Notes: generated by a model not told the origin, from the sequence alone. Counted from the first letter of the stretch, positions 8,903 to 64,000 are shown. The stretch is DNA of 64,000 nt from Heterodontus francisci (GCF_036365525.1 NC_090404.1:3596001-3660000), one strand, 5' to 3'. Program-made: numbers and translations.

Positions 8903-9049
8903 GTAAGAGACATAACCTAGGACAGTTTCAGGTCATTCTGAGCGTCAATCTTAAAAAGAGTTAAGAATGTTTTTGGACTTATCACAGAGTCCATAATTAT
9001 TTCTATTTTCCTATCATGCCGTTTGTGTTTCCTTCCAATTTAAAAGCAA

Positions 9050-9430
9050 AATACTTTCCTTTATACAGCGCCTTTAGTGACCTCCGATTGTCCTAAAACA
9101 CTTGACAGTCAATGGGATTACTTATGAAATGTGATCACTGTCGTAATGTACAAAGTTTTGTAGCCAGTTACTGCACATCAAGCTCTTAGGAACAGCAACA
9201 TGGTTTCATATTTGTTGAGGGATACATGTTGACCAGGAATCAGAGGCACCTGCTGAGTATTTCCAGCATTTTCTGTTTTTATTTAGATAGGCCCTCGGCT
9301 TAACATATCCCAAAGTTGTCACCTCCCACAATGCATTGCTCACTCGCCACTACATTGCGCATGTCAGCTCATGCTGGTGTTCAAATATCTGGAGTGGGAA
9401 TTGACCCCCCAATTCCTACCGAATCAGAAT
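9050..9430 (-). mobile_element. Degenerate Deu-domain SINE (SacSINE1-like) in the CH2-CH3 intron
   Basis: Patchy similarity to the better-preserved copy at 44248-44690 (tttatacagcgcc..., ggccctcggcttaacat..., ctggagtgggaattgaccc). Confidence 0.5.
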
Positions 9431-10539: not shown

Positions 10540-11210
10540 CTTGGAAGTATTGTGAACTGTGAGAAGGATAGTGATAGACTTGACCAGGACATAGACAGGC
10601 TGGTGAGATAGGCGGGCACATGGGAGATGGAATTTAATGCAGAGAAGTGTGAACTGATACATTTTGGTGGGAAGAATGAGAAAAGGCAATATCAAATAAA
10701 GGATACAATTGTAGAGAAGGTGCAGGAGTGAGCTGAGGGGTATATGAGTACAAATTGCTGAATGTGGCAGGGCGCATTTGAAAGTAATTAATAAGTCAGA
10801 CGGGATACTGGACTTTATAAATCGATGCATAGACTACAAAAGCAAGAAAGCTATGGTGAACAATTATATAACACTAGTTCGGCCTCAACTGGAACATTGT
10901 GCCCAGTTCTGGGCAGCACATTTTAGAAAGGAAATAAAAGCGTTTGAGAAGGTGCAGAAATAAAATACAAGAATGGTTCCCGGGGTGAGGGACTCCAGTT
11001 ACATGGATAAATTGGAGAAGCTGTGGCTGTACTCCTTAGAGAAGAGAAGGCTGAGAGAAGATTTGAGGGAGATGTTCAAAATCATGACGGGTATAGGCAT
11101 AGTAAATAGGGGGAAACTGTTCCCATCGGCGAAAGGGTCGAGCACAACAGGCCACGGAATTAGGGTGAATCGCAATGTGTTGTTAGGCTCGGGAATGGAC
11201 TGCCTGAGAG
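10540..11210 (+). mobile_element. CR1 LINE 3' fragment
   Basis: ORFs 10778-10963 (LVRPQLEHCAQFWAAHF) and 10973-11221 (LYSLEKRRLREDL). Confidence 0.85.
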
Positions 11211-11339
11211 TGTTTTGTTAATTCGTTTGTGGGATGTGGGCATCGCTGGCGAGGGCAGCATTTATTGTACATACCTAATTGCTCTTGACAAGCTGGTGAT
11301 GAGATGCCTTCTTGAGCTGCTGAAGTCCATGAGGTGTGT

Positions 11340-13024
11340 CATAGAGTCCTAAAGTCATAGAGTTATACAGCACAGAAAGAGGACCTTCGGCCCATCGTGT
11401 CTGTGCCGGCCATCCAGCACGCAACTATTCTAATCCCATTTTACTGCACTTGGCCCGTAGCCTTGTATGCTGTGGCGTTTCAAGTGCTCATCTAAATACT
11501 TCTTAACTGTTGTGAGGGTTCATGCCTCCACCACCTCTTCAGGCATGCGTTCCAGATTCCAACCACCAGCTGAGTGATTTTGTTTTCCTCATATTCCTGC
11601 AAACCTCCTTCCCCTTACCCTAAATGTATGCAGCTGGTTCTTGACCCCTCCGCTAAGGGAAAAAAGAGGTTTCTTCCTATCTAACCTATCAGTGGCCCTC
11701 ATAATCTTGTACGTCAATCATGTCCCCCCTCAGTCTTCACTGCTCCAAGGAAAACAACGCTAGCCTTTTCAGTCTCTCTTCATAGCTGAAATCCTCCAGC
11801 CCAGGCAACTTCCTGGTGAATCTCCTCTGCACCCTCTCCAGCGCAATCACATCCTTCCTACAGTGTGGTGCCCAGAACTGTACATAGTACTCCAGCTGTT
11901 GCCTAACCAGCGTTTTATATAGCTCCATCATAACCTCCCTCTTATATTCTAAGCCTCAGCTAATAAAGGCAAGTATCCCATATGCCTTCCTAACCACCTT
12001 ATCAACCTGTGCTGCTGCCTCAGTAATCTATGGACAAGTACACCAAGGTACCTCTGACCTTCTGTGCTTCATAGGGTCCTACCATGCATTGTATATTCCC
12101 TTGTCTTGTTCGTCGCCCAGAATGCACTACTTCACACTTTTCAGGATTAGATTCCATTTGCCACTGTTCCACCCTTCTTACCAACCCAAAGATATCGTCC
12201 TGGAATCTAAGGATTTCCTCCTCACTATTTACAACACCACCAATTTTCGTGTCATCTGCGAACTTACTGATCATACCTCCTATATTCATGTCTAAATCAT
12301 TGATGTACACTAAAAACAGCAAGGGTCCCAGCACCGATCCCAGTTGTACACCACTGGTCACAGGCTTCCAATCACAAAAACAGCCCTCGACCATCACCCT
12401 CTGTCTCCTGCCACTAAGCCAATTTTGGATCCAATTTGCCAAATTGCCCTGGATCCCATGGGATCTTACCTTCTTAACCAATCTCCCATGCGGGATCTTA
12501 TCAAAAGCCTTACTGAAATCCATGTATACTACATCTACTGCTTTACCCCCGTCTTCACATCCAGTCACCTCCTCGAAAAATTCAATCAAGTTAGTTAGAC
12601 ACGATCTCCTCCTAGCAAAGTCATGCTGACTATCCCTGATTAATCCCTGCCTCTCCAAGTGGAGATTAATCCTGTCTGTCAGAATGTTTTCCAATAGTTT
12701 CCCAAACACTGATGTGAGACTCATTGGCCTGAAAGTACCTGGTTTATTCCTGTTACCCTTCTTGAATAATGGTACCACATTCGCTGTCCTCCAGTCCTCT
12801 GGTACCTCTCCTGTGGCCAGAGAGGAATTGAAAATTTGTGTCAAAGCCCCTGCTATTTCCTCCCTTGCCTCACATAACAGCTTGGGATACATATCATCTG
12901 GGCCTGGGGATTTATCCACTTTTATGCGCGCTAAAACAGCTAATACTTCCTCCCTTTCAATGCTAATATGTCCAAGTATATCATAGTCCCCCTCCCTGAC
13001 CTCTACACCTACATCGCCCTTCAA
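11340..13024 (-). mobile_element. CR1 LINE, 5'-truncated (RT domain to 3' tail)
   Basis: ORF 12020-13024 ([26 protein letters not shown]), ORF 11737-11931, and tail repeats at ~11340-11370. Confidence 0.93.
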
Positions 13025-13497
13025 TCGTCGCTTTCAAAAGGGAATTGGATAATTTCCTAAAGATAAAAAAAATGCCTATCTGCGGGGAAAACGCAAGGGA
13101 GTGGGACGAACTGATTTACTCTTGCAGTGAGCTGGCGCTGTCATGAAGGGCCGAATGACTTCATTCTGTGCTGTTAACATTCTCTGATTTTCTGATTCCA
13201 TGATCTGGACGATGTTATCCAGTGCGTAATACAACTGCGCCTGAATTTATTCAAAATATTATGCTGAGAATTTACTTCACAGTCATTACATCGGACTCAG
13301 GGTGAAAATACATAGGAAATGTTCGAGTTTTCTGGAATCGTTGTCTAGCCTTTTCCCTGCCAATAACGATGGCGTTAACGCAGCACAGGGATTGATATCT
13401 TAAAGGTGATATATTTTCCTTGAGGGAGTGAAGGCTGAATACTGGTGTCCTGATACTGAAGATGAAACTTTGATTGTCTCGAATTTCTGTTACACAG

Positions 13498-13806
13498 TTG
13501 GTCCCGCATGCACCGATCCAGTGATCATCCTGCCACAACCTTCAATAGAACAGGTCTTACTGGAAGCGACGGTGACCTTAACCTGCGTTGTGTCTAATGC
13601 TCCTTATGGAGTCAACATAACCTGGATACAAGAAAATAAGCCTTTGAAATCAGAGATTGCTGTCCAACCCGGAGAGGATCCCAACAGCGTGATCACCACC
13701 GTAAACATCTCGACACAAGCCTGGCTGAGTGGGGCTGAGTTCTACTGCGTGGTGAGCCATCAGGATCTGCCGACTCCTCTCAGAGATTCCATCCACAAGG
13801 AAGAAG
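13498..13806 (+). CDS. IGHM: IgM heavy chain constant exon CH3 (Cmu3)
   Basis: Acceptor tacacag|, donor |gtaagc, phase 1/1. Encodes [46 protein letters not shown]...[29 protein letters not shown]. Confidence 0.96.
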
Positions 13807-14255
13807 GTAAGCGGTAAGATTGAAGTAATAAGTAAGAGGCTGTGCCTATTTCTGGTGTCTGTGCAAGGCCCAATTCGTCCTATTGAGTAGTCTAATGGAC
13901 AACTCTGATAATGTAATTGTACTTACACTCAGGAACCCCTCTGGAAGTCTCGGTGATACGTTTAAGGGGAAGCTAGGCAAGTGGATGAGGGAGAAAGGTA
14001 ATACAAGGAGAGGAAGTAAGGTTTACGGAGGTTCGTGTGCAACAAAAACACCAGCACAGAGAAAATGGCCCGGATGGCCTGTTCTTGTGCGGTAAATTGT
14101 ACGCAATGTCTTTTTACGTTCTCAGCGAGATGGATTGCATCCATCTCTGCTCCAGGCTGGAAGACAGAACAGGCTCCAAAGGGGAACATTCACATCTAAC
14201 CACCGGAATTCTGGAATTCTCCAGTTTTTTTACACTTATTTTAATTTTTCTGCAG

Positions 14256-14647
14256 TTGAGAATCTGCGGGAACCGTCCGTGTCTGTCCTCCTGCCCCCGG
14301 CAGAAGAAGTCTCCGCTCAGAGGTTCCTCTCCCTCACCTGCTTAGTGAGAGGTTTCTCCCCCCGAGAGATCTTCGTCAAGTGGACCGTCAATGACAAGTC
14401 GGTGAATCCCGGCAACTACAAGAACACCGAGGTGATGGCAGAGAACGACAATAGCTCCTTCTTCATCTACAGCCTGTTATCCATTGCAGCAGAGGAGTGG
14501 GCCAGCGGCGCTTCTTACTCCTGTGTGGTGGGACATGAAGCGATCCCCTTGAAGATCATCAACAGAACGGTTAATAAATCCAGCGGTAAACCGAGTTTTG
14601 TGAACATTTCCCTTGCACTGTTGGACACCGTTAATTCATGTCAATGA
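14256..14647 (+). CDS. IGHM: IgM heavy chain exon CH4 plus secretory tailpiece
   Basis: Acceptor tttctgcag|. Encodes [43 protein letters not shown]...[24 protein letters not shown] followed by the tailpiece [20 protein letters not shown] (N-glycosylation site, penultimate Cys). Internal donor G|GTAAAC after 14585 serves the membrane form. Confidence 0.97.
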
Positions 14648-24612: not shown

Positions 24613-24651
24613 GGTTACTGTATGGACTCGCTATCTGTTTGTGACACTGTG
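24613..24651 (-). other. 23-spacer RSS of the TCR V pseudogene
   Basis: Minus strand CACAGTG (24651-24645), 23-nt spacer, ACAGTAACC (24621-24613). Confidence 0.9.
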
Positions 24652-24974
24652 GTTCTTACTGCAGAGATAAGTGACTGTGTCTGTCACTTCCGCTTCTCTC
24701 ACAGTCAGGGTACTGAGCTGATTACCTCCGCCGATTGAAACACTGATCCTCCCGTTTTGATCAGTCCCGCGTGTGGCCATCACCAAATGCTGGAGGGGCT
24801 GATTGGGGCCCTCTCGGTACCAGCGCAAGATGTTAAATGCAGCGATAGCATGGATACCGTTCCCACTTCATTAACAACTACCAGCCGAAGGAGCTGCACC
24901 ACCCCATCTTCACCGGTCACATAAGTGCAGATCAGAGTGTAAAACAGCAAGACAACTCTGTAGATCGAGAGCAT
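24652..24974 (-). pseudogene. TCR alpha/delta-type V pseudogene with leader contiguous with V (no intron)
   Basis: MLSIYRVVLLFYTLICTYVTG-EDGVVQ..VNEVGTVSML, then a frameshift with the first Cys missing, then AFNILRWYREGPNQPLQHL...GRISVSI..STLTVREAEVTDTVTYLCSKN, directly followed by a 23-RSS. Confidence 0.85.
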
Positions 24975-25319
24975 TATCTGATCTGATGAAACAGAGTCTG
25001 AAGATATTGTACACAGCAGTCAGATAAGAACAAGGACACGAATATTACGTGCGGGAGAATTAACACGAAGCTAAACTCCCGCTTCAGTTCCAACTCAGGG
25101 GCTTCTTCTTGTCAAAGAAAGGAAACAAGCTGAATGTCGAAGTTTACGCACCCAGGAGTACCCACTCTATGTTTCTCACTGACACCACCTCACCCTGTCT
25201 CTGACCTCACACCGCACCTCCCACCCTCAATGTTTCTCACCTACACCAGCTCGCACACCCTCCCAGTTCGCAGCAGCCGCCCACGCTGCTTTTTTTGTGG
25301 TTAACGCTGTCCTCTTATT

Positions 25320-31438: not shown

Positions 31439-32519
31439 CTGGATTCTGCTCTTATTGCTGCTCTCAATCACATCCAGACTGAACCATATTCATTCTGACA
31501 GTCATAATTTGTTGCTGAGGTTTAATATTCCAGAGCTTTAAACATGGCCTCAGGGCCATAATTAGAAAGCACAGCAACTCAAAGTGTTTGTCCCCCAGAG
31601 ACAGGGGAATGAGGTAACTGGAGCCCAACTTGCTGCAAATGATTTGAAATAAAGCTGATTTATTAGAGAGTTTCTTTATTCTCGGGAAGTTGTACATCGG
31701 ATTGTCCCCTGTCAATACAGAGCTGCATTTTAGGGCCGGCAGCATCTTTAAAGGAGCTACCAATTAGTCCCACTCCCTTGGCCTTTCCTCAAAGCCCCGC
31801 AAACTCTTCCTTTTAAATATTTATCCAATTCCCTTTGGAAAGTTATTATTGAAACTGCTTCCACCTTCCTTTCAGGCCATTCTAGATCACAGCAACTCGC
31901 TGAGTATTTTGTCAATTATTTGTAACGTTCGTCTGTTGTTAAATACATTTGCTCAGAAGACATAAGTTGAAATTTAAATCGGGCATACAGGGGTGATGCT
32001 GTGGGACACACACTAAGTCCAGTAGCTGGAAATGATTTACCGACTGGGTTTTGTGTTTAGTGATCCTGGTCATGTTACCAATACCCTCCCTTGATGCCAA
32101 GGCTAGGAGAGGCATTCTGTAACGTATGGGGAGCTGGGACTTGTCCATAAGAGTAACCGAAGGTATCAGAACTGAAATAATCTAGAGTTAGAAAGGAGAA
32201 AAAGCCCCAAAATGGAACAGCTGGTAACAGGACATCAATTAGTTTCTTCCTGTACTGGAGAAATCCAGAACTGGACAAGCGTTTGAAACAAATCTGATTG
32301 ATTTGGAAAATATCTAAATTAAACTCCAGCCCAGTTGTAGGGGTTACTAACATCAGCAGAAACAAACTCCACTTTCAGAATGAACCTGATTCAGTCCTGG
32401 ACGTGAGTAACAGCTAAATCCAACCACCAAAACAACAACGTGCCTTTAGCTTCAACATAATAAAACGTTCCAAGATGCTTTACAAGAGAATTATAAAACA
32501 AAATATGATACCAAACAGT

Positions 32520-33000
32520 CTAGTGTAATATAAACTGCGACAGGGTCTTGTGTAATATAAACAGATGCAGGGACCAGTGTCATATAAACAGAGACAGGGT
32601 CTAATGTAATTTAAACAGAGACAGGGTCTAGTATAACATAAAGAGACAGGGCCTAGTGTAATATAAACAGAAACTGGGCCTAATGTAATATAAATAGCGA
32701 CAGGACCTCAGTGTAACAGAAGCAGAGACAGTGTCCGATGAAATATAAACAGAGGCAGCCTAGTGCAATGTATAGAGAGACCGGGCCTATTACAGTGTAA
32801 TTGAGAATAAACCGAATGTAATATTAGCAGAGGTATGGTCTAGCATCGTATTAACAAAGATGGGACCCGATATGATATAAATAGAGGCGTTGTCTGGTGT
32901 AATAACAGAGACAGAGCCTTGTGTAATACAAACAGAGAGATGTTCGACATTTCTAATAAGCACAGGTCCTACAGTAATATTAACAGAGAAATGTCTACAA
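32520..33000 (+). repeat. 27-bp satellite (AGTGTAATATAAACAGAGACAGGGTCT)n, degenerate
   Basis: Direct tandem units visible. Confidence 0.85.
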
Positions 33001-34244: not shown

Positions 34245-36790
34245 AGTCTCTCTGTTTATATTACACTTCGACCCTGCCGCTGTTTATATTACACTGGATC
34301 TTGTCTCTGTTTATATTAAACTAGACCCGTCTCTGTTTATGTTACTCTTAGACCTTGTCTCTGTTTATATTACTCGAGATCATGTCTCTGATTATATTAC
34401 ACTAGACGCTGTCTCTGTTTATATTATACTTCGACCCTGTCTCTGTCTATATCACACTGGACCCTGTCTCTGTTTATATTAGTCTAGACACTGTCTGTTT
34501 ATATGACACTCGACCATGTCTTGGTTTATTTTAATATAGACCCCATCTCTGTTTATATTACACTGGACCCTGTCTCTGTTTATATTAAAACGGACCCTGT
34601 CTCTATTTATATTACGCTAGACCCCGTCAGTGTTTACATTACACTGGACCCCAGCTCATAGGAACATTGTAAATAGGAGCAGAAGTAGGCAATTCGGCCC
34701 CTCGAGCCTGCTTCGCCATTCAAATAGATCATGTCTGATCTTCCGCCTCAACAACATTTTCCGGCACTATTCTCACATCCCTTGATACATTTAATATCGA
34801 TAAATCTATCGATCTCTATCTTGAACATTTTAAGAAAATTCCAAGGATTCACCATTTCCTCCTCATCCCAGTCCTAAATGGCTTACTTCTTATTTTGAGA
34901 CTGTGTCTCCTGGTTCTCGGCCCCTCAGCCGGGGGTGGGTTGGGGGGGGGGGGGGGGGGGGAGGGGTCATCCTTCCTTGTCGAGTCCTATGTTGTATGCT
35001 TCAATAAGATCACGCTCATTTTTCTGAACTTTAGAGAATATAGGCCCAGTCTCCTCAATCTTTCCTCATTGGACAATCCCGCCATACCAGGGATCAGTCT
35101 GGTGAAGCTTCGTCAGACTCCCTCTATGGCAAGTACATCCGTCCTTAGGTAAGGAACGCAAAACTGTACACAATACTCGAGATGCTGCCTCAACAAGGCT
35201 CTATACAATTGCAGCAAGACTTCTCTACTTCTGTACTCAAACCCTCTTGTAATAGAGGCCAACATGCCATTTCCTTCCTAATTGCTTGCTGCATCTGCAT
35301 GTTAGCTTTCACTGACTTATCAACAGGAGACCTCGGTCCCTTTGGACATCAACACTTCCCAATCCCACACCATTTAATAAATACTTTGTATTTCTGTTTT
35401 TCTACCAAAGTGGATAACTACATAATTTTCCACATATTATTCCATCGGCCATGTTTTTGCCTACTCACTTAGTCTGCCTAAATCCCTTGAAGCCTCTTTT
35501 CATCCTCCTCACAACTCACATTCCCACCTAGTTTTGTGTCATTAGCAAAGTTGGAAATATTATATTTGGTCCCCACATCCCAATTATTGATATAGATTGT
35601 GACTAGCCAGGGCCCAAGCACTGATCCTTGTGGTACCCCACTAGTCACAGCCTGCCAACCTGAGAATGATCTGCTTATTCCTACTTTCTATGTTCTGTGT
35701 GTTAACTAATTCTCAAGCAATTCGTGTATATTACCACTAATCCCACGTACTCTAATTTTGCTTACTAATCTCCTGTGTAGGACCTATCAAAAGCCTTCTG
35801 AAGTTCCAAATACACAACATCCACTGGTTCCCCTTATCCATTCTGCTCGCCACACCCTCAGAAAACTCTAACAGCTTTGACCAACTTGATTGCCCTTTCA
35901 TAATTCCGTGTTGACTAAGCCAAATTCTACAATATGTTGTGGGTCCAGTTATCACATCATGTAGAATAGATTCCAGCACTTACCCTGCCACTGTTGTCAG
36001 ATTAACAGGTCTGTAGTTCCCCATTTTCTCCCTCCTTCCTTTCTTAAATATTGCACTAGACCAGGTTTCAGTTTAAATAGAACTAGACCCTGTTTCCATG
36101 TATATTAAAATAGACTCCGTCTCTGTTCATATTACACTATACCCTGTCTCTGTTTATATTACACTATATCCTGCCTCTGTTCATATTACACTATACCCTG
36201 CCTCTGTTTATATTACACTAGACGCTGATTCAGTTGATTTTAATCTAAACCCTATGTCAGTAATCAATGCACTAGGCCATATCTCACTTTTTATTATTCT
36301 AGATCCTATATCAATAATTCATGCACTAGGCCTTGTCTCAGTTGATATTAATCGAGTTCCTGTATCAGTAATCACTTGACTATGCCCTGTTTCAGTTTAT
36401 TTTATTCCAGGTCCTGTAGCTCTATTAGCTTCACTTGGCCCTGTCCCAGTTAATGCTGCACTAGCCAGTGTTTCTGTTTACCATAGAATAAACCATTTCT
36501 GTTCATCTTACTCTGGACCCTGTCTCTGTTTATATTACACTCAACCCTCGTTCACTTCATTTTGACATTACCATGTTTTTATTTAATGTTGCACTCGGCC
36601 ACCTCCAGTCCTAGATTATGTTACTGGAGAACATGTCTAGACCATGTCTCTGTTTATTTTACATTTGGCATTGTTTCAGTTATTACTGCACAAGACCCAG
36701 TCTCAAGTTATATTAAATGCAGCTAGTCTAAGTCCAGCGTGCATCCTATCCTGTCTCTTTTATATTACACTAGGTCGTATCGTATTAATT
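34245..36790 (-). repeat. 27-bp satellite array in reverse orientation, interrupted by a CR1 fragment
   Basis: (ccctgtctctgtttatattacactaga)n at 34245-34655 and 36050-36790; produces spurious VSVYITLDP ORFs. Confidence 0.88.
34658..36050 (-). mobile_element. CR1 fragment inserted in satellite
   Basis: RT remnants (gggcccaagcactgatccttgtggtacccc; ORF 35752-35979) and a 3' tail at ~34658. Confidence 0.85.
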
Positions 36791-46710: not shown

Positions 46711-46914
46711 GATGGAAATTGGTCTCAGGCAGTGGAGCAGAATGCACCGTGTACGCAGCAATTCCGTTGACTGCAATAAAATTTAATATCAGGTCCTGGG
46801 TGGAACGGGCGAACAAGCCCGTTGGACTGGTATCTGAAACCAATTTCCAGTCAAACATCTTTATTTAGAAAAAAAAACTCTTCATCCCATAGAAATATGA
46901 ACAGAGATGGGGTT

Positions 46915-49900
46915 TGGTGTAATATAAACAGAGACAGGGTCTAGTGCAATACAAACAGATGCAGGTATCAGTGTAATATAAACAGAGACAGGGTCTAGTG
47001 TGGCATAAACATAGAGAGGGTCTAGTGCAGTAAGAACAGAGATATCGTCCAGTGTAATATAAACAATGATGCGACGAAGTCCAGTGATAACTGAGACATG
47101 GTGTAATGTAATATAAACAGAGACAGGGTCTAGTATAGTATAAACAGAGAAAGGGTCTAGTGGAATATAAACAGAGACAGGGTCTTGTATAATATAAACA
47201 GTGGGTTGTGAATCTTTGGAATTCGCTACCCCGAGTTCTGTGGAATCTCAGTTACTGAGTATGTTTAAAGCAGAGATAGATTTCTAAATACAAATGACAT
47301 AAGAGGATATAAGGATAGTGTGGGGAAAAAGGCATTGAAGTGGATGATCAGCCATGATCATACAGATGGCGCGACAGGCTTGATGGGTGGAATCGCTTAC
47401 TCCCGCTCTTATGTTTCTATGTTTCTAACCCGAGATAGGGTCTTGTGTATTAAAATGGAGAGATGGTCTAGTGTAGTAAGAACAGAGATAAGGCAAAGTG
47501 TAACATAAACAGAGACATGGCGAAGTCCATTGATAACTGAGAGAGGGTCCAGAGTAATATAAACAGAGATAAGGCCTAGCACAATGTTATCAGTGAGAAA
47601 GGGCCTCGTTTAATATAAAGAAACACATGTTTCAGTGGAGTAATTACAGGGGCATGGTCTAGTAGAATATGAAAAGAGCAACAGCCTGGTGTAACATAAA
47701 CAGAGAAAGAGCCAAGAGTAATATAAACAGAGAGAGAGAGAGAAACTAGTATAACATAGCAGACAGAGGGTCGAATGTATTAGAAACAGGTCGGGTCTAG
47801 GATAATATAAACAGGTGTAATATAGATAGAGACAGGATCTAGTTTAATATGAGCAGAGACAGGCTCCAATGTAATTGAATCTAAGATAGGGACTAGTGTC
47901 ATATAAATAGAAAAAGGGTCCTGTGAAATATAAATAGAGACGGGGTCCAGTCTAAGATAAAACGACACAATGCCGAGTGTAATATAAACAGAGGCAGAGT
48001 CTAGTATCATATACAGAGATAGGGCTTAGTTTAAAACAAACAAAGGCAGGGTCCAGTGTAATGTAAACAGAAACATGCTCCAATGTAATATAAAGAGAGA
48101 AAAGGTCCACAATAATGTGAACAGAGACGGGGTCTAGTGTAATGTAAACAGAGACGGGTCTGGTGTAACATAAACAGAGAAAGAGGATTCTAGTGAAATA
48201 TAAACAGAGAAAGAGGATTCTAGTGAAATATAAACAGAGAAAGGGGCTTGTCGAATATAAACAGAGACAGGGGCTCTTGGAATATAAACATAGACAGGGT
48301 CTTGTGCATTGCAAACAGTTACAGGGTCTTGTGGAATATAAATAGAGACAGGGTCTCGTGTAATATGAACAGAGTGAGGGCATTGTGCAGTAAGAACAGA
48401 GATAGGGCAAAATACAATATAAACAGAGACATGGCGAAGTTCATTGAGAACTAAGACAGGGTCCAGAATAATATAAACAGAGATGGGGCCTAGCACAATA
48501 TTACCAGAGAGAAAGAGCCTCGTTTAATATAAGGAGACATGTTTCAATGGAGTAATAACAGGGGCATGGTCTAGTATAATATAAACAGAGAATGCGCCTA
48601 ATGTAATATAAGCAGAGACTGGGCCTAGTTTAGATTTAGTTTAGAGATACAGCACTGAAACAGGCCCTTCGGCCCACCGAGTCTGTGCCGACCATCAACC
48701 ACCCATTTCTACTAATCCTACACTAATCCCATATTCCTACCACATCCCCACCTGTCCCTATATTTCCCTACCACCTACCTATACTAGGGGCAATTTATAA
48801 TGGCCAATTAACCTATCAACCTGCAAGTCTTTGGCATGTGGGAGGAAACCGGAGCACCCGGAGGAAACCCACGCAGACACAGGGAGAACTTGCAAACTCC
48901 ACACAGGCAGCACCCAGAATTGAACCCGGGTCCCTGGAGCTGTGAGGCTGCGATGCTAACCACTGCGCCACTGTGCCGCCCCAAATATAATTTAATATAA
49001 ACAGAGACAGGCTCCAGTGTAATAGAATATGAGATAGGGGCCAGTGTAATATAAACAGAGACAGGGTTCAGTCTAAGACAAAAGGACACAATGCCGAGTG
49101 TAATGTAAACAGACACATGCTCTCACGTAATACAAACAGAGACAGGGTCCAGTGTAATATAACCAGACACATGGTCTAGTGTAATATAAACAGAGAAAAG
49201 GTCCAGAGTAATATGAACAGAGACGGGGTCTAGTGTAATATAAACAGAGACAGCGCCTCGTGTAATATAAGCAGAGAAAGGGCGTAGTGTAATATAAACT
49301 GAGACAGGGCCTAGTGTAATATAAACTGAGGCAGAGCCTAGTGTAATATAAACTGAGAAAGGGTCTAGTGTAATATAAACAGAGTCAGAGTCTAGTGTAA
49401 TATAAACTGAGATAAGGCCGAGTGTGATATAAAGGGAGATAGTGTCTAGTGTAATATAAATAGTGACAGGGCCCAGTGCAGTAAGAACAGAGACAGGGTT
49501 TCGTGTAATATAGACAGAGACACGGTGAAGTCAAGGGACAACTGAGACAGTGTCAAGTGTAATTTAAACAGAGAAAGGGTCTAGTGTATTATAAACAGAG
49601 ACACGGTGAAGTCGAGTGATAACTGAGACAGTGCCTAGTGTAATATAAACAGAGACAGGGTCGAGTGTAATATAAACAGAGAAAGGGTCCAGTGGAATAT
49701 AAGCAGATACTGGACCTGGTGTAATATATAGAGAGACAGGGCCTAGTGGAATTTAAACAGAGACTGGGTCTGTTGTGAAATAAGTAGAGACAGGGCCTTG
49801 TGCAGTAAGAACTAAGATAGGGTCTCATGTAATATAAACAAAGGCAGGGTCTAGCAAATATTAATGGAGAGACAGGATCTGTTTGATTTAAAGCGACATG

Positions 49901-50380
49901 TTTCAGTCAAGTAGTAGCAGGGGCATGGTCTAATATAATATAAGCAGAGAAAGAGCCTAATGTAGTATAAACAGAGCAAGAGCATACTGCATCATCAACA
50001 GAGAAAGCACCTAGTATAATATTGCAGATACAGGTTTTAGTGTAATATAAACAGAAACGGGGTCAGCGTAATATAATGAGATAAGGAGCTTGATGTAATT
50101 TAAACAGAGAAAGGGCATGCGTAATACAAAAAGAGATAGGGTCTTGCTTAATATAAACAGAGACACGGCCTAGTTTAATATAAACAGAGACAGGGTCTAG
50201 TGTAATATAAACTGATACGGGGTCTATTTTAATGTAAACAGAGACAGGGCGTAGTGCAATATAAACTGAGACAGGATCTAGTGTAATATAAACTGATACG
50301 GGGTCTATTTTAATGTAAACAGAGACAGGGCGTAGTGCAATATAAACTGAGACAGTGTATCGTGTCACATAAACAGAGAT
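46915..50380 (+). repeat. Large 27-bp satellite array, interrupted by a CR1 tail (47200-47430) and a SINE
   Basis: (AGTGTAATATAAACAGAGACAGGGTCT)n with higher-order variant blocks. Confidence 0.93.
48628..48982 (-). mobile_element. HE1-like tRNA-derived V-SINE, full length
   Basis: Minus strand GGGGCGGCACAGTGGCGCAGTGG (A box), GGTTCAATTC (B box), V-domain GCGTGGGTTTCCTCCGGGTGCTCCGGTTTCCTCCCACA, and a CR1-derived 3' tail. Confidence 0.92.
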
Positions 50381-51176
50381 AAAGGCTAGCATACCATTCG
50401 CCTTCTTAATTGTTTGCTGCATCTGCATGTTAGCTTTCAGTGACTTATTGACAAGGACATCCAGGTCCCTTTGTACATCTACACTTTCTAATGTATTACC
50501 ATTTAAGAAATACACTGCACATCTATTCCTCCTACCAAAGTGGACAACCTCACATTTTTCCACATTATATTCCATCTGCCACGTTCTTGCCCACTCACTA
50601 GGTCTGTCCAAATCCCCTAGAAGCCACTTTGCATATTCCTCACAACGTACATTTCCACCTAGTTTTGTGTCATCCGCAAACTTGGAAATATTACATTTGG
50701 TCTCTGCATCCAAATCATTGATATATATTGTGAACAGCTGGGGCCCAAGCACTGATCCTTGTGGTACCCCACTAGTCATAGTCTGACAAAGCGAGAATGA
50801 CCCGTTTATTTTACTCTTTGCTTTCTGCCTGTTAACTAATCCTTAAACCATGCCAGTATGTACTTTAGTTTTGCTGACCAACCTTCTGTGGGGCATCTTA
50901 TCAAAGCCTTCTGAAAATCCAAGTATTCCACGTCCACTTACTCCCCTTTATCAATTTTGTTAGTGATATCCTCAAAAAACTCCAACAGGTTCATCAAACA
51001 TGATTTCCTATTCATAGATCGATGTTGACTATGCTCGATCAGATCATTATTATCCAAGTTTCCATTTATCACATCCTTTAGAATAGATTCTAGCATTTCT
51101 CCAACGACTGATGCAAAGTTAACCAGTCTGTAATTCCCTGTTTCCTCTCCCCCCAGCACACCGCCGCGCCCCCACC

Positions 51177-52150: not shown

Positions 52151-53769
52151 TGCCTTTTTCTGTGCATGCGCCATAAACACAACAGCAAAAGACTTACTGG
52201 CCAGTCCCTGGACCCGGTGACACCAAGGTCTTCGCACGCTCGCTCCCCGCGGCTCTCTACGGCCTCTCGCTTCCGGCCCTCTCCATTCAGCCGTTCCCTC
52301 CAGCTGCGGATGCCCAATCCAGTTGCTTTCTCCCCTACCCAGTTGCTTTCTCTACTTCTCCTCAGTACTTCAGGCATTGCAACTGTTTGGTCCCTGCATT
52401 TTGCATGCTCCCTCTCCCCACCCCTCCCTGCACTCCCCACCCCTCCCCCTCTTCACCCACCCCTCCCTCTACCCCCCCACCATAGTTGAATATCTGAAGT
52501 GCAGTTGCAAAGTCGGGGAAATAGCATGCAAAACAAAACCTCAACAATTCTGGGTTTAATTATTGAAAAGTTTTATTAAGTTCATTAAGTATCTGAGGAA
52601 CTGCTGTGCATGGATACATGAGTGTTGTGTCCAGCATTCCCGTTAGACAGACAGGCCGAGTCTCTGCGATGCACAGCTAAAGAGATTGTTCCTGGAGAGC
52701 CTTGTGGTGAATAAAAGCTTGGCTCTCTATTCCACTACTGTATTGTCCATGTGAAGAAGGCAAAGTCACAAGAGTCTGAGCTCAGTCTATTCTTGGTGAA
52801 TTTTCCCCAAGCGCATCCCAATGTGCATTCCCAATTCATCCATAAATGCAATGTTCCTTTCCACATCGTGATGAGCTCCGCAGCATGATCCAGTTACCTT
52901 CGTTGCTTGAATGCTGACCTTAAGTCTCAAGGATTGTTTTCTCGACGGCATGTTTTACATGAAAAGAAATAAAGCAAATCAGAGTCAGAGCTGCCTCCCT
53001 CCATCCACTGAAATTACTGTTGCGCACACCTTTTTAAGTTCTGCAGTGAAGGCACCAATTGATAACGTCGCCAATGAAGCACTTATTACCCACCTCAGAT
53101 GCAGGAATCATCACATCCTTGCGTCATCTCCTGCACTGCCTCCTTTGCTTGAATGCCATCCTTAAGTGTCAAGGATGGTTTTCTCAAGGGCACGTTTTAC
53201 ATGAAAGAAAATAAGGAAAGAACATCAGTGTCAGAGCTTCCCTCCCTTCAATGGAATTACTGTTGAGCATGCTTTGTGTTCTGCGGTAAAGGCATGTACT
53301 GATAACACCGCCAATGAATCACTTAGTACCCACCTCAGCTGTAGGAGGCAGGATGATGTTATTGTCCCTATCTCGTGATGGTTCAATGCTGCTCTCAGGG
53401 AAAACATGAATGATGTGAGGGTGCTGGAAAAGAAGCACATTTCTTTTGGGCTATGAACATAAAGCTGTCCATTTAGCCCAGCAGTTCCCTGCTAGTGGTT
53501 ATGTTACTCGTGCATCTTCCCATCCATTCCCATTTAATCCTGCCTACTACTATCACCAGTTGTGTTCACAGCAAGAGCATTCACATTGCTGCTACCACTG
53601 GACACGGCATGCTTGTTTCTTTTAGTGCTCAGTCTCTTCTTGCTGAATGTTCCCCAAGTGCTTGACCCCTTTGGACGCCCTCTCTGCTTGACAGGCAGCA
53701 ACTGGCAATTGCGGAGTCTCACAAGGCTCTGCATGGTTGTTTCAACGTCGGATGGGGAAACAGGTGGCT

Positions 53770-54090
53770 GTGTGTCCATGAGCACTGCCCTGATGGGTGT
53801 AGGAGCAGGTAACTGTGTGCCCATGAGCACTGCCCTGATGGGTGTAGGAGCAGGTAACTGTGCAACTGAGCACTGCCCTGATGGGTGTAGGAGCAGGTAA
53901 CTGTGTGTCCATGTGCACTGCCCTGATGGGTGTAGGAGCAGGTGACTGTGTGCCCATGAGCACTGCCCTGATGGGTGTAGGAGCAGGTAACTGTGTGCCC
54001 ATGAGCACTGCCCTGATGGGTGTAGGAGCTGGTAACTGTGTGTCCATGTGCACTGCACTGATGGGTGTAGGAGCAGGTGACTGTGTAACT
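53770..54090. repeat. 45-bp tandem repeat, about 7 copies
   Basis: gagcactgccctgatgggtgtaggagcaggtaactgtgtgcccat units. Confidence 0.92.
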
Positions 54091-54697: not shown

Positions 54698-54920
54698 ACA
54701 TGCGGTGGCCAAGACAATGGAAATGTTTTCAGAGCAATTTACAACAGGGACTGGAGAACATGCGGTGGCCCAGACAATGGAAATGTTTTCAGAGCAACTT
54801 ACAACAGGGACTGGAGAACATGCGGTGGCCCAGATAATGGAAATGTTTTCAGAGCAACCCACAACAGGGACTGGAGAACATGCGGTGGCCCAGACAATGG
54901 AAATGTTTTCAGAGCAACTT
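54698..54920. repeat. 60-bp tandem repeat, about 3.7 copies
   Basis: acatgcggtggcccagacaatggaaatgttttcagagcaacttacaacagggactggaga units. Confidence 0.93.
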
Positions 54921-55275
54921 GCAAAGGCAGAGCAACTTACCTTGGAACAATCTCCTGTGTCAAATAAAAATGAAGCAAGCCTCCAAAACGAATACATAAT
55001 TCAGATAAAATGCCCGACGAAACCTCCCCTCCTTCCACTTTTAAAAAGTCGCGCTGAAGCTTTGACGCATGCGCAGAGGCCAAACTGGCGCGTCGGCGAG
55101 AAAGACGAAATAACGCGATGACGTCATCTGCGCATGCGCACGACCGTACCGGCAGGTCGGACCGCAGCGCATGCGCAGGGATGAGGAGACTGGGTGCGCA
55201 TGCGCGGACCGCGGCGCATCCTGATGACGTTTTCCGATGAAGTAGCGTTGTCATGAATTACTTTGCACAGAGAGA

Positions 55276-57238: not shown

Positions 57239-57467
57239 GAAGATTTCTACACTTTCCCCGTGCTTTATATCCTTGGGTCTCTGCAAATCACAGAATGTTC
57301 AGGTCTTATGTACAGCTCTGTCCGTGCTCTGTACCACTGTGTTTTGCTTTATGCCACCGTGCTCAGGTTTCTGTACAGTTGTCTCCGTGCTCTGTATCAC
57401 TGTGTGTCTGTAATCCCCACCACGTTCAGGTTTTTGTACAGCCCTCTCCGTGCTCTGTATCACTGTG
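57239..57467 (-). other. Tandem array of 23-spacer RSSs (3 complete, 1 decayed), period ~63 bp
   Basis: Heptamers CACAGTG at 57467-61, 57404-398, 57341-35. Nonamers ACAAAAACC 57437-29, ACAGAAACC 57374-66, ACATAAGAC 57311-03. All spacers are 23 nt. Decayed fourth copy at ~57239-57277. Confidence 0.92.
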
Positions 57468-57775
57468 AGCTATGCGCCGACTCAGTGCACAGTAATACAC
57501 AGCAGAGTCACTCATTTGGAGTTTGGCGATGTTTAACCGGCTGATTTTCTCGGCAGGATCAATAAAAGCAGAAATTCGTCCCCCAGCAGCGTTTTCTTTA
57601 TTCTCCTGTCCTGAAGTTTGTCTCTGAAGCAGGTATTTCGGAGCCTGCCCTGGGGACTGACGGTACCAGTGTACTGTGTACTGACAGAACCCTGAATATT
57701 CACAGCTTAAAGTAACAGTCTCACCGACAGCAGAGGTTTGCAGAGGCGCACTCCGGGACACCAGCGAACTGGAAT
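57468..57775 (-). CDS. TCR delta-type V exon with extra CDR1 cysteine (NAR-TCR supporting-Vdelta-like), open frame
   Basis: Acceptor ttcataccacag|, phase 1. Encodes DSSSLVSRSAPLQTSAVGETVTLSCEYSGFCQYTVHWYRQSPGQAPKYLL...GRISAFIDPAEKISRLNIAKLQMSDSAVYYCALSRRIA, followed by a perfect 23-RSS. No intact leader exon found. Confidence 0.9.
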
Positions 57776-59509
57776 CTGTGGTATGAAAATATGATATTAT
57801 TATGTCTTTAGTTGCTGTTTCCTTGGAGACACATGTGAATCACATAGTGCGGCCTTTTGCGACAATGCCTCTGAAGCCCTTTCGAACTTGATTCACTTTC
57901 ATTGGCAAAGAAGCAAGCCGGGAGCTTCCAATGACATTGATACTTTATTTATTTAGGCAGCGAGCTGTTCTGAAAGGGTGGTGGATCAGTTTCAATGATA
58001 ACTTTAAACAGGCAATGGGATATATATTGTGGGGAAAGAGCAGGGCGCGTGGGACCAACTGAATAGCTCTTTCAAAGGGCCGGCACAGACAAAATGGGTC
58101 GAATGGTTTAATTCTGTGCTATATCTTTCTATAATTTCTATTAAATACCTGTTTCCTTTTTGGTGTGTGTGAAAGTCTACCAAAAGAAACATTTCAATAG
58201 TGTATTCTGATCCTGTTGGAGACGATCACCTTGCAAAGGTGTTTGACCGCGCGGAACCCGTGTGTTGGTCAAAGGTGCACAGCCAGATCTAACAGAAAGC
58301 AACGATTGAGCAAAGTTGACTCAGAACTCCTGTGTGTTGACGATCAGGGTTTAACTGCAGGTTAACATTCACGGGAGCGCCTACCTGCCTCTTGCTTTAT
58401 TTGTTCCTCTTTTTTTCATTAATGAGGCCCGTTTTAATCCGTTCCACTTGAATCTGAGATGCATGCAGTTACTTTCATTTTATTTCTAGATCTGGGTCGC
58501 TCATGTTGTTCTGTTATTTGTCACCATGGGAACTTGTCCCGATGTCTCTCAGTTGTCGGTTGGATTCAGTCTGTGCAGTTTCCGCAGTGGTTTTACTGTT
58601 ACTCTCTGGGAAATGGCTCTTCCCGCTTTCTGGCAATTTCTATAACTGCAGCCCATTCGTTGATTCTCTTCCGTGTTCTCCGAGAGTAGTTTTCTCTTTT
58701 TTAATATTATCCAGAATCTGCAGAACAGGAATAGACCATTCCACCCAGCTGGTCTATGCCGGTTTTAATGTTCAGCATCCTGCCATATGAATTCCCTCTT
58801 CCCACCCCGAGCCCTGTGTTCCTCCATTCCTTTCTCTCTCCTGTATTTTTCAAGCCTCCATTAAACTACGCAATGTTGTTTGCTCCAACCATTACATATT
58901 CTATACTCCATAATAAGTGTGTCCTAACGTCTTTATTTTTTTTCTCAGTGACTATTTTATATTGATGGCCTCTTGTTCTGGATTCAATAACAAGTGGAAA
59001 CTGTTTCTCCTCCTGTACCCTATCCAACCACATTACAATATTAATGACATCGATCTAGTCTCCTCATTGTCTTCTCTTTTCCAATGAAAAGAGCCCCAGC
59101 CTCTTCGATCTTTCCACATGATGTAGATTGCTGCTGCTCTCTGTTCACAAGAATATAAGAAATCCAAAACTGCGGAAAGGACCAGAGCTCATTCGTAGCC
59201 CGTCCCTCCAATAAAGCTCATTGCCTCGATGTCAGATTGTCCTTTCACTGGCTTTGAGATTGTTTTCTCCACACTCGCGCCTGGCCGATGAATCCGATCT
59301 TTGTCTCCCGTTCCGTGAATTATTTCTTGCTTGCTGTAAATGGACTCTCTTCCAGTCTGCATTTGTTCCCTGGGGTGTTCCTCTTCTCGTTCATAACAAT
59401 TTGAGAAGCTCGCACTCACGAGCGCACTGAACAGTATTGTTTCAAGAATCAATAAATAGGGATGCAGTTAAATTACTGTAATCCAAATTCTCAGACACGG
59501 ATAGGAAAT

Positions 59510-60830
59510 ATTAGAATTATCATAGAATGTTATAACGCAGAAGGAGGCGATTCACCCTGTCGTGTCTGTGAAGGTTCTCTGCAAAAGAAATTTCACTACT
59601 CTCACTCTCCGCCCTTCTCCGGCCGTCCTGATTTTTTCCCCCTTTCAGCTGCGTATCCAATTGCGTTTTAAAAAGCACGGTTAAATCAGCCTTGACCACA
59701 CTCTCAGCCAATGAATTCCAGAATGTATTCCAACTCGCTGTGTGGTGAGGTTTTTCCTCATGTCGCCTTTAGTTCTTTTCCTATTCACTTTAAACCCTTG
59801 TCCTCTGCTTCTCGATACTTCTTCAAATGGGAACAATTTCTGTCTATTTAGATCTCTCATGATTTTGTACACCTCGATCAAATCTCCTCTCAACCTCCTC
59901 TTTTCTAAGGAGAACATCCCCAGTTTCTCCAATCAATCCTCGAAACCGAAGTACCTGAAATCTGGAATAGTTTTCATAAATCTGTCCTGCACCCTCTCTA
60001 AAACATTTAGATTCTTACTAAAGTACTATCGCAGAATTCGACACAATACTCGAGCTGAGGCCGAAACGGTGTTTTATAAAGGTTCATCATAACTTCCATG
60101 TTTGTGTGCTCAATGGCTCTATTTATTACACCCAGGATTCAGTATGTCTTTTTTCACTGCATTCTCAACCTGCTCTGCCACCTTCAACAATTTGTCGCCA
60201 GATCCTTCTTTTCCTGCACCCCCTAAGAATTGCACTCTCTAATTTATATTGCCTCTCCTTATACTTCCTACCAAAAATATATCGCTTCACACTTCTCTTG
60301 TTAAATTTAATCTGCCACATCTTCGTCTATTCCACTGTCCTGTCCATGTTCTCTTGAACTTTATGACTGTCCTTCTCAGAGTTCGCAATCGTTCCAAGTT
60401 TTGCGTCAGCTGAAAATTTGGAAATTGTGTCTTGCGCACTCAGATCTAGGTTATTAATATGGATCAAGAAATGAAGTGGTCGTAATACCGACCAATGGTG
60501 AACGCCACTCCATAGCTTCCTCCAGGCTGTGAAACAATCGTTCATCTCCACACTCCTGTCACCCAGCTAACTTCGTATCCATGCTGTCATGGCTTGAACT
60601 TGGCTGGCGAGCCTATTATGTAGCATTTTATCAAACGTATTTTGGAAGTTCATATGCACCACAAATATCGTATTATCCACATCAACCCTCTGTTACCTCA
60701 CCAAAAATACTATATCAAGTTAGTTCAACACGATTTGTCTTTAACAAATCCGTGATCACTTTCCTTAATTAATCCCCACTTGTCCACTTGTCTGTTAATT
60801 TTGTCCCCAATTATATGTATCAACCACTTA
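59510..60830 (-). mobile_element. Degenerate CR1 fragment
   Basis: ORFs 59681-59932 and 60327-60551. Confidence 0.82.
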
Positions 60831-63255
60831 AGGAGAAATTGCATAACTCTCAACAAATATATATCCATTGAGAATGAAAAAACACTACGAAAGGATGAAC
60901 CATCTGTCGCTAACGAAGGAAGTTAAGAATGGCATCAAATTGAAAGAAAAGCCATACAATGGTGTGAAGATTAGTGAGAGGTCAGAAGTTTGGGAAAATT
61001 TTAGAAACTAGATGACTGAAAAGAAATAAAAAGGAAGAAATTAGTATATCAGAGTAAACGAGCGAAAAATAGAAAAACAAAGTAAGAGCTTCTCCAAGTA
61101 TCTAAAATGGAAGTAAAGTAAACCTTGATCCCTGAGAGGTTGAGATTGGGGAATCAATAATAGGAAACAAGGAAATGGCAGAGACTTTGAACAATCATTT
61201 TGTATCTGCCTTTGTGGCAGAACACACTATAACAAGTCCCAGGAATAGTAGAAGATCAAAGGGCAAAGGGGAGGGATAAACTTGAAACTCACTATCACGA
61301 GAGAAAAATTACTGGGAAAACTAATGGGACTGAAGGATGTCAAGTTCCCTGGACCTGTTGGCCTGCATCCTAGGGTCTTAAAAGAAGTGGCTGCAGAAAT
61401 AGTGGATGCATTGGCTATAATATTCCAAAATATCTCGAGTCGGGCAAGGTCCAAATGGTTTAGAAAAAATGCAAATGTAGCAACACCCCTCCCCCCTCCC
61501 CCGCCCCCGCTCCACCTGTTCAAGAAAGGAAGGAGTCAGAAAGCAGGAAACTATAGGCTAGTTAGCCTAACGTCTGTCATTGGGAAAATACTGAAATCCA
61601 TTATTAAGGAAGTAATAGTAGGATATTTAGAAAACTCATAATACAATCAAGCAGAATTACCATGATTTCATGAAGGAAAGTTCAATGGGGAAGTGAAAAA
61701 AGAAATAAGAGCAGCAAAGAGAGAGTATGAGAAGAGACTGGCAGACAACATAAAAGGGAATCCAGAAGTCTTCCATCGGCATTTCATTGATTAAAAGGGT
61801 GGAATCAGGAAGAGTGGAGCCAATTAGAGGCCTAAAAGGTGAAAGTTGGCTGTGATGTGAAAAACAGAATAGTGGCGAATGGTCGTTTTTAGGACTAAAG
61901 GAAGGTAGATAGTGGGGTTAGAGCCATTGTTTTTCTTGATCTATATTAATAACAAGAATTTGAATGTGCAGGGTACAATTTTAAAATTTGTGGATGACGC
62001 AAAACCTGGAAGAATTTTGAACTGTGAGGGTGATAGGGATAAACTTCAAGAGAACATAGACAGGTTGATGGAATGGGCGGACATGTGGCAGATGAAATTC
62101 AATGCAGTGAAGTGTGAAGTGATACATTTTGGTAAGAACGAGGAGAGCCATATAAATTAGAGGATATTGTTCTAAAGGAAGTGCAGGAGCAGAGGGGCCT
62201 GGGGGTATATGTGCACAAATAATTGAAGGGGGCCGCACCGTTGGGCAGTGGTTAGCACCGCAGCCTCACAGCTCCAGCGACCCGGGTTCAATTCCGGGTA
62301 CGGCCTACGTGGAGTTTGCAAGTTCTCCCTGTGCCTGTGTGGGTTTCCTCCGGGTGCTCCAGTTTCCTCCCACATGCCAAAGACTTGCAGTTTGATAGGT
62401 AAATTGGCCATTATAAATTGCCCCTAGTATAGGTGGTAGGGAAATGTAGGGACAGGTGGGGATGTGGTAGGAATATGGAATTAGTGTAGGATTAGTATAA
62501 ATGGTTGGTTGATGGTCGGCACAGAGTCGGTGGGCCGAAGGGCCTGTTTCAGTGCAGTATCTCTAAACTAAACTAAAACTAAACTAAGGTTGAAGAGCAG
62601 GTTGAGAAAGCGGTTCATAATGCATACTGGATCCTGGGTTTTATAAGTCGAGGCATAGAGTGCAAAAGCAAGGAAGTTATGCTGCACCTCTATAAAACAG
62701 TGGTTCGGCCTTAACTGGAGTGTTATGTCCAATTCTGAGCACCCCACTTTATGAAGGATGTGAAAGCATTGGAAAATGTGCAGACAAGAATTGTAAGAAT
62801 GGTTTCAGGGATGAGGGAGTTCTGTCCTGAGGACAGATCAGAGAAGCTGGCGCCATTCTCCTTATAGAAGAGAAGTTTGAGAAGAGATTCGATAGAGTCG
62901 TTCAAAATCACGAGGGGTCTTGACAGACGACAAACTGTTCCCATTGGCAGAAAGATCGAGAACCAGAACACACTGATTTAAGGTGATTGGCAAAAGAACC
63001 ATAGGCAACCAAAGGGAAAACTTTTTTTATGTAACCAGTTATTAGGATATGGAATGCACTAACTGAGTGTGTGCTGCAGACAGATTCAAACATGGCTTTC
63101 AAAGGGGTATTGGATAATTATCGAAAGAGAAAAAAAATGGCAGGGCCACGGAGAAAAGGCGGGGGAATGGGACGAGGTGAGTTGCTCCTGCAGAGACCCA
63201 GGACGGACACGCGGACCGAATGACACCTCTTTGGGGTGTAACCATTCTATGATAT
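60830..63255 (+). mobile_element. Degenerate CR1 fragments interrupted by a SINE
   Basis: ORFs 61282-61641 (PGPVGLHPRVLKE, GNYRLVSLTS) and 61912-62160. Confidence 0.82.
62228..62587 (+). mobile_element. HE1-like V-SINE, full length
   Basis: tRNA-like head, V-domain and (TAAAC)n tail; homologous to 48628-48982. Confidence 0.9.
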
Positions 63256-63617
63256 GCCAATGAGATACAAATTCGGACCAATCTCTTTGTCGAGAAGATG
63301 CTCCCTTTTTTATTGCGTTAATATTAAGTTAATAATTTTCGACCATTGTGAATACTTTGTGTGCCCAGTGCAACTGCATGTGACAGACTGGCAGGTGTAG
63401 ATACCGAACGGGCCTTTGCCTTGTTAGGCTCACTCTCGTGGCACTTCATTCACACTGCCCGGATTGTACTGGCAGATTCTGCTCAGAAAGGAAATCGGTG
63501 GCCCCCTCCAATGCTCACACGGACAGGCAGAGCTCTCTCCGTTGCAGTTAACATCCAGAGCGGATGCTAGACTCTGAACAATTTGCGTTTCTTTAAAACT
63601 AACTGAGGATCAGAGGT

Positions 63618-64000
63618 TTTTTTAATTCATTTCTTGGGATGTCGGTGTCTCTGGCAAGGCCAGCATTTGTTTCCCATCCTTAATTGCCCAAGTGAAGGTA
63701 GTGCTGAGCTGCTTTCTTGAACCGCTTCAGCCCATCTGGTGTGGAAACAGCAAAAGTGCTGTTAGGGAGGGAGTGCCAGGAAGTTGACCATACGGCACTG
63801 AAGGATCTGCGATATAGTTCCAAGTCAGGATGGTGTGTGGCTTGGAGGGGCATTTGCAGGTCGTGGTGTTCCCATCCATGTGCTACGTTTGTCCTTCTAG
63901 GTGGTAGAGGTCGCGGGTTTGGAAGGTACTGTCGAAGGAGCATTGGTGAGTTGCTGCAGTGCATCTTGTTGATGGAACACACTGCTGCCACTGTTCATCG
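63618..64000 (-). mobile_element. 3' end of a second CR1/L2-group LINE family (runs off the window)
   Basis: ORF 63680-63991 (RSF....SWHSLP...RFKKAA). The same 3' end occurs at ~11218-11340. Confidence 0.7.

Follow-up and report, generated by a model that had tools for sequence, protein, structure and literature searches.

How does a V gene segment come to be followed by several copies of its own recombination signal, and what, if anything, would the additional copies do? By the textbook rule of V(D)J recombination one segment goes with one signal, and a canonical V segment has a single RSS. In the window analyzed here, a stretch of 64,000 nucleotides from Heterodontus francisci (NC_090404.1:3596001-3660000, with positions counted from its first letter), a V segment on the minus strand is instead followed by three to four co-oriented RSS copies at a 63-bp period, the distal ones without a V of their own. 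The setting is the oldest living lineage with RAG-based immunity, in which the NAR-TCR chain rearranges doubly, and a V with several apparently competent, co-oriented signals amounts to a natural competition test of RAG choice and of locus scanning. As set out below, the most likely explanation is that the array is a mutational by-product, and one that recurs in related sharks.

The V Exon and Its Neighborhood

The receptor-type features of the window that bear on the question are the following.

57468-57775, minus strand: V exon of the TCR alpha/delta type; open frame, cag acceptor, phase 1; Pfam V-set E = 7.9e-19
8575-14647, plus strand: IgM constant exons (heavy chain) coding for three C1-set domains plus a secretory tail that ends in DTVNSCQ
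24613-24975, minus strand: second V segment, probably a pseudogene; single 23-RSS, CACAGTG-23-ACAGTAACC, no array

The V exon begins behind an acceptor at 57776-57780 (phase 1, minus strand) and has the 3' end TGTGCACTGAGTCGGCGCATAGCT, which gives the encoded C-terminus YYCALSRRIA. Its CDR1 holds a Cys (YSGFC) that is invariant in an alignment with the only two close relatives that turned up, P0001 (71% identical, from an environmental contig) and P0002 (Callorhinchus milii, 48-49% identical). No leader exon, sought as an ATG start with a hydrophobic peptide and a GT donor in the right phase, was found within 2.7 kb upstream of the V, and a search of solved structures with the V matched generic antibody V domains only. 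The lack of a leader peptide and a conserved CDR1 Cys are stated as features of supporting V segments, for the elephant shark survey genome, in the part of PMC1845163 drawn on here. Judged by its sequence, the V is a member of this described class, the leaderless NAR-TCR supporting TCR-delta V segments with a CDR1 Cys, a class whose V exon is joined by splicing to the NAR-TCR J; the likeness comprises the V-set exon of the alpha/delta type, the missing leader, the CDR1 Cys and an IgM/TCR neighborhood. Such NAR-TCR-associated ("supporting") TCR-delta V segments of cartilaginous fish were reportedly the subject of Criscitiello et al. 2006. More than one RSS behind a supporting V is not mentioned in that same part of PMC1845163, whereas the V studied here has three intact signals and one that is decayed.

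Elasmobranch genomes have TCR V genes interspersed among their IgM clusters (PMC12227049), and the window, which combines IgM constant exons with a TCR-delta-type V, agrees with this layout. The best named relatives of the IgM exons are found in Chiloscyllium punctatum (76-88% identity) and in Callorhinchus (57-63%). A NAR-TCR V-D-J would be expected upstream of a supporting V. The 6.2 kb between the V and the end of the window show none, and no V-like ORF was found on the minus strand of this interval (57776-64000), which is all that the window covers on that side.

The IgM exons, on the plus strand, are oriented opposite to the two minus-strand V segments of the window, and a LINE fragment (12020-13024) lies inside the intron between two of the IgM constant exons. 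The second V segment is V-like in its 3' half (WYREGPNQPLQHLV...TYLCSKN), and its 5' half is broken by stops and frame breaks. Upstream of the V of interest, contig depth over 58046-58133 and 58926-59189 is extreme, up to 1.5e5, in all four of the public runs and organisms introduced below; these two stretches are presumably widespread SINE/LINE-derived repeats common to sharks.

A 63-bp Array of Recombination Signals

Read in the direction of the V, the array is composed as follows.

57429-57467, minus strand: RSS1; CACAGTG, 23-nt spacer, nonamer ACAAAAACC; perfect consensus, abutting the V coding end
57405-57428, minus strand: cassette 1; TGAACGTGGTGGGGATTACAGACA; opens with TGA in the V frame
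57366-57404, minus strand: RSS2; perfect heptamer, 23-nt spacer, nonamer ACAGAAACC with one mismatch (position 4)
57342-57365, minus strand: cassette 2; TGAGCACGGTGGCATAAAGCAAAA; holds CACGGTG without a partner nonamer
57303-57341, minus strand: RSS3; perfect heptamer, 23-nt spacer, nonamer ACATAAGAC with three mismatches
57302 and 57278-57301, minus strand: inserted C and cassette 3; TGAACATTCTGTGATTTGCAGAGA; unit 3 is thus 1 nt longer
57239-57277, minus strand: decayed fourth RSS copy and end of the array; CCCAAGG...GAAATCTTC; heptamer lost

The 63-bp unit is made up of a 39-nt RSS and a 24-nt flank, and about 3.5 copies of it stand head to tail directly behind the V. A preliminary description, made from the sequence alone, had proposed a V followed by three co-oriented 23-RSSs and a decayed fourth, and this layout is borne out on the minus strand. 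The heptamers of RSS1, RSS2 and RSS3 are 7/7 each, all spacers are exactly 23 nt long, and all signals are co-oriented; a consensus scan (heptamer-23-nonamer, at most 3 mismatches, whole window) gave again the three intact heptamers, the spacer lengths and the nonamer mismatches of 0, 1 and 3 that had been reported. Nor is the array a product of chance: where 0.82 sites were expected in the 64 kb, the scan found five that are 23-RSS-like, and none of 100 shuffles reached five. Three of the five are the array signals, spaced exactly 63 bp apart. Tandem Repeats Finder describes the array with a period of 63, 2.7 copies, 81% matches and a score of 206. When the window was compared with itself by blastn, no further copies of the array were found within it, and the self-matches end near 57255. 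The only other good 23-RSS of the window (24613-24651, minus strand) is single, and no 12-RSS with 3 or fewer mismatches was found in the 64 kb.

RSS1 is like the canonical single 23-RSS of a V in that it is perfect and abuts the coding end, and it is presumed from these properties to be the working signal of this V. A functional 23-RSS needs the CAC of its heptamer directly at the border and a spacer of 23 +/- 1 nt; RSS2 and RSS3 share the heptamer and the spacer length of a canonical signal. Within the nonamer, the A-tract at positions 5-7 carries the most weight for RAG binding (PMC12711392). This tract is intact in RSS2, while one of the three mismatches of RSS3 falls inside it, at position 7; by the same rule RSS2 should still work and is probably RAG-competent, and RSS3 is probably a weak signal. 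Cassettes 1 and 2 each open with TGA in the V frame, and the V-frame ORF (57426-57761) ends at the TGA of cassette 1. An antisense ORF also runs through the array (57260-57541, plus strand); a word-indexed protein search with it gave no match, and HMMER returned only unrelated repetitive proteins.

Divergence among the Copies

Identities between the units, with the Fisher p for RSS identity versus cassette identity, are listed by pair.

Units 1 and 2: RSS 35/39; heptamer 7/7; spacer 20/23; nonamer 8/9; cassette 12/24; p = 0.0008
Units 1 and 3: RSS 33/39; heptamer 7/7; spacer 20/23; nonamer 6/9; cassette 16/24; p = 0.12
Units 2 and 3: RSS 32/39; heptamer 7/7; spacer 19/23; nonamer 6/9; cassette 11/24; p = 0.005

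The preliminary description spoke of variable 24-nt cassettes between similar signals, citing 4 differences in 39 nt between RSS1 and RSS2 and 12 matches in 24 between cassettes 1 and 2. These counts were reproduced, and cassette 2 is indeed divergent in both of its comparisons (p = 0.0008 and 0.005). The generalization to all cassettes does not stand: cassettes 1 and 3 agree at 16/24 with p = 0.12. The description had also passed over the 1-nt insertion in unit 3. The effect is thus mainly that of cassette 2, and mostly that of its 3' half, which matches cassette 1 at 3/12 positions, versus 9/12 for the 5' half (manual count).

Two properties of these copies bear on their origin in different ways. 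Heptamers that are 7/7 and spacers of 23 nt, yet a cassette 2 at only 12/24 and 11/24, are not what uniform neutral decay predicts. Among the RSS copies, however, the spacer (19-20/23) is conserved as well as the nonamer (6-8/9), and signal quality drops with distance from the V, from 0 through 1 to 3 nonamer mismatches and then to a dead copy. The equal keeping of spacer and nonamer, together with the stepwise decay of the nonamer, speaks against selection directed at the motifs that RAG contacts.

Related Units in the Same and in Other Organisms

Contigs from four public runs (X1, X5, X6 and X9) were matched to the window at 85% likeness or more; only contigs were used. In X1, which comes from the same organism, one contig equals 57264-57408 with 0 differences and a second covers the same span with 8 differences. 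Because this run may derive from the sample of the assembly, the exact contig does not count as independent support. The depth in X1 is about 9, the unique level, over the distal units (57254-57341), and 267-386 (about 930 at single positions) in the bins of RSS2, cassette 1, RSS1 and the V end, compared with 137-189 over the V exon. Summed depth over the proximal bins is thus about twice that of the V exon, which indicates that proximal-like RSS-cassette units are multi-copy, although depth does not equal copy number. In X5, a run from the same sample that is guessed to be RNA, the V exon takes up most of the depth at the locus and the array little of it; unique sequence beside the V exon has almost no depth, the upstream repeat-derived stretches are covered, and one contig equals 57531-57638 exactly. 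The contigs of this run, if its guessed RNA origin is right, hint that this V is transcribed. Among the loose ends listed, which are ends of contigs rather than of reads, none falls at a heptamer border.

In another organism, C (X9), the depth of about 18 resembles single copy, and one contig joins a V to RSS units with a step that goes back 93, while a second contig goes back 114. The joints, 57464>57372, 57467>57354 and 57467>57478, show that in another species a related V is followed by at least two RSS units and probably by a third. The V end in organism C is 10 nt shorter, skipping 57468-57477, and is still followed by repeated RSS units. This bears on an observation in the preliminary description, that each cassette has the same length as the stretch of the V from its Cys codon to the heptamer. 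Both measure 24 nt, as was said; the length of the V end is not a fixed feature, as organism C shows, and the agreement is probably fortuitous. The V end studied here is unusually long, and its final 10 nt may be an insertion at the heptamer border, either a germline junctional footprint or a remnant of a germline-joined D. On the minus strand, these 10 nt read GCGCATAGCT.

A different picture is seen in organism B (X6), where the depth on 57342-57429 is 1.6e5, with single positions up to 3.8e5, and that on the V exon is 3e2-1e3. Many contigs run from 57382 to 57433, continue with 8-13 other letters and restart at 57382-57385, that is, they go back 49-52, and from the step and the additional letters together the repeat period in organism B is 57-60 bp. 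Most of these contigs lack one base each at 57437, 57439 and 57441, so that the distance from the heptamer to the nonamer-like TCACAAACC is about 20 nt, not 23. The satellite thus retains the heptamer and cassette-1-type sequence and loses the RSS geometry; its main variant lies at 57423. The cassette 1 type is conserved across species, being present in this V array and in the organism B satellite, and the spacer of about 20 nt in the latter means that the unit can amplify and persist without RSS geometry. The organism B repeat is homologous to the RSS heptamer, the spacer, cassette 1 and the first part of the nonamer, and it has the look of a satellite family that a V recombination signal has seeded.

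Origin of the Array

Our preferred reading, to which we give somewhat better than even chances, is that the array is a minisatellite of the 23-RSS of the V and its 24-nt flank, with RSS1 doing the work. This simplest reading, a tandemly duplicated RSS-plus-flank unit, was absent from the options of the preliminary description. The array would have originated by slippage or unequal exchange, events in which the window, and apparently the genome, is rich. RSS1, abutting the coding end, would join the V to D-delta, and RAG cutting would still be possible at RSS2, poor at RSS3 and impossible at RSS4. Were the V joined at RSS2 or RSS3, the coding joint would still contain RSS1 and a TGA in frame; such a join would thus be non-productive with RSS1 left in place, and the extra signals would then be tolerated passengers rather than built-in devices. 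Youth or homogenization would keep the copies alike, and the equal conservation of spacer and nonamer fits recent copying or homogenization, where selection would predict better-kept nonamers. Other minisatellites are plentiful in the window (periods 27, 45, 60, 84 bp and longer) and take up about 7% of it by a rough sum. They favor the minisatellite reading, as do the decay with distance from the V, the good conservation of the spacer, the stops in the V frame and the 20-nt-spacer satellite of organism B.

The array could, on the other hand, be a selected multi-RSS device of the supporting V-delta, which would raise RAG occupancy or capture in locus scanning or provide second-chance joins. 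By such means the leaderless V might compete against hundreds of ordinary V alpha/delta segments, or a join at a distal RSS might leave RSS1 free for a further D. Although cassette 2 is strongly diverged, three heptamers are perfect and their spacers measure exactly 23 nt, which is what such a device would display, as is the A-tract that is kept in the RSS2 nonamer; the doubled proximal depth in X1 reads as if V paralogs were generally multi-unit, and the tandem units behind the organism C V, recurring at single-copy depth, could reflect retention by selection. However, joins at RSS2 or RSS3 would be wasteful, with an in-frame TGA and an internal RSS, the nonamer is conserved no better than the spacer, RSS quality falls with distance from the V, and in organism B the homologous unit thrives as a satellite whose 20-nt spacer is non-functional. 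Recurrence among paralogs, too, may go back to one ancestral duplication. We therefore regard the device as unlikely, while keeping it as a serious competitor. The more inclusive proposal that tandem 23-RSS arrays are a conserved, selected trait of supporting V-delta segments across cartilaginous fish, as a RAG pad or a retry ladder, and that the unit also founded the high-copy satellite, is doubtful. A further account holds that germline RAG activity, by repeated cutting and re-sealing in open-and-shut or hybrid joints in which nucleotides were lost and added, rewrote the heptamer borders. In cartilaginous fish, germline RAG activity has yielded germline-joined Ig genes. The stretches that deviate most, namely the 3' half of cassette 2 (3/12) and the final 10 nt of the V, which this account would explain, each sit immediately 5' of a heptamer. 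These are two observations only, each open to other explanations (ordinary indels, paralog differences); moreover, the cassettes are constant in length (24, 24 and 24+1 nt), which is rarely the outcome of junctional processing, and the 63-bp register requires a duplication mechanism anyway. We consider this account improbable.

Two options of the preliminary description, in which the cassettes act as compact D-like segments or as CDR3 conversion donors, are more improbable still. Each cassette is followed 3' by a 23-RSS, as is a TCR-delta D, and has a GTG-ending motif 11-13 nt before the next heptamer, so that the core of 11-13 nt and the 23-RSS behind it recall the arrangement of a TCR-delta D (12-RSS, D, 23-RSS). 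The cassettes differ from a TCR-delta D in having no 5' 12-RSS, for which 24 nt leaves no room. The motifs CGTGGTG, CACGGTG and TTCTGTG had been noted to lack a good nonamer, and rightly so, with none at 12 or 23 nt; as heptamers they match at 4-6/7 positions, and with no nonamer 12 or 23 nt upstream of them, and no 12-RSS in the window at up to 3 mismatches, the D-like option fails. [quoted passage not shown] The donor option fares no better: the cassettes are identical to the V end at 7-10 of 24 positions, where 6 are expected by chance, and have no V framework homology and none of the flanking V homology that conversion needs, which led us to reject them as donors of the pseudo-V type. Cassette 1, in addition, is the conserved inter-RSS part of a repeat common to another species. 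Least credible of all is an assembly artefact in which a single RSS was artificially expanded. It is true that no single short-read contig crosses the whole array. Between copies, however, 4-7 of the 39 RSS positions and 8-13 of the 24 cassette positions differ, a divergence that collapse or expansion would not produce, the span 57264-57408 is represented in X1 by an exact and by a variant contig, and tandem RSS contigs are found in two other organisms; differing copies and the same arrangement elsewhere make an artefact very unlikely. An array unique to this copy, or made by assembly, had been named beforehand among the outcomes that would speak against the proposal, and it is not what the contigs indicate.

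Comparison with Known Systems and Wider Meaning

Secondary RSSs used for replacement or editing include the VH-replacement heptamers and the kappa RS/kde; they are single, usually consist of a heptamer only, and lie inside the V or far away from it. The array resembles them in offering extra RAG targets near a V, which could allow secondary rearrangement, and to our knowledge cryptic or secondary RSSs are never tandem copies of the full RSS of the V itself. In the literature searched, with partial coverage of NAR-TCR, we found neither tandem whole-RSS arrays behind a V nor satellites of an RSS plus its flank, and the statement in the preliminary description that no equivalent was known is to this extent confirmed. 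Minisatellites and satellite DNA can be born from a functional or mobile element. The array is similar to such element-born satellites in its units, which are some 60 bp long, stand head to tail and decay towards the edge, and in a low copy number in some species beside huge amplification in another; it differs in that the seed is an antigen-receptor recombination signal, of which we found no description in the literature searched. Metagenome contigs searched for the exact heptamer plus the conserved spacer core gave four chance matches (L001-L004), with no array or V in the surrounding 420 nt. Two of them, L002 and L004, have a high GC content and may come from a eukaryotic host.

Use of the additional signals would point to a new layer of control on V choice or to a means of repeating a rearrangement. 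Should they go unused, recombination signals can seed minisatellites and even large satellites, and shark genomes would then hold thousands of near-RSS motifs as potential off-target sites for RAG.

Other Minisatellites in the Window

Minisatellites of the window other than the RSS array are given by position.

32518-32789, 34249-34651, 36048-36415, 46894-47201, 47815-48407 and 48993-50379, both orientations: arrays of the 27-bp minisatellite
53761-54086: minisatellite with a 45-bp unit, 7.3 copies, 91%
54698-54924: minisatellite with a 60-bp unit, 3.8 copies, 94%

The 27-bp family has a consensus of approximately TAATATAAACAGAGACAGGGTCTAGTG and forms arrays of up to 52 copies in both orientations, one of which adjoins a LINE reverse-transcriptase fragment (50063-50779). 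The 45-bp and 60-bp minisatellites are well conserved and sit inside long ORFs on both strands.
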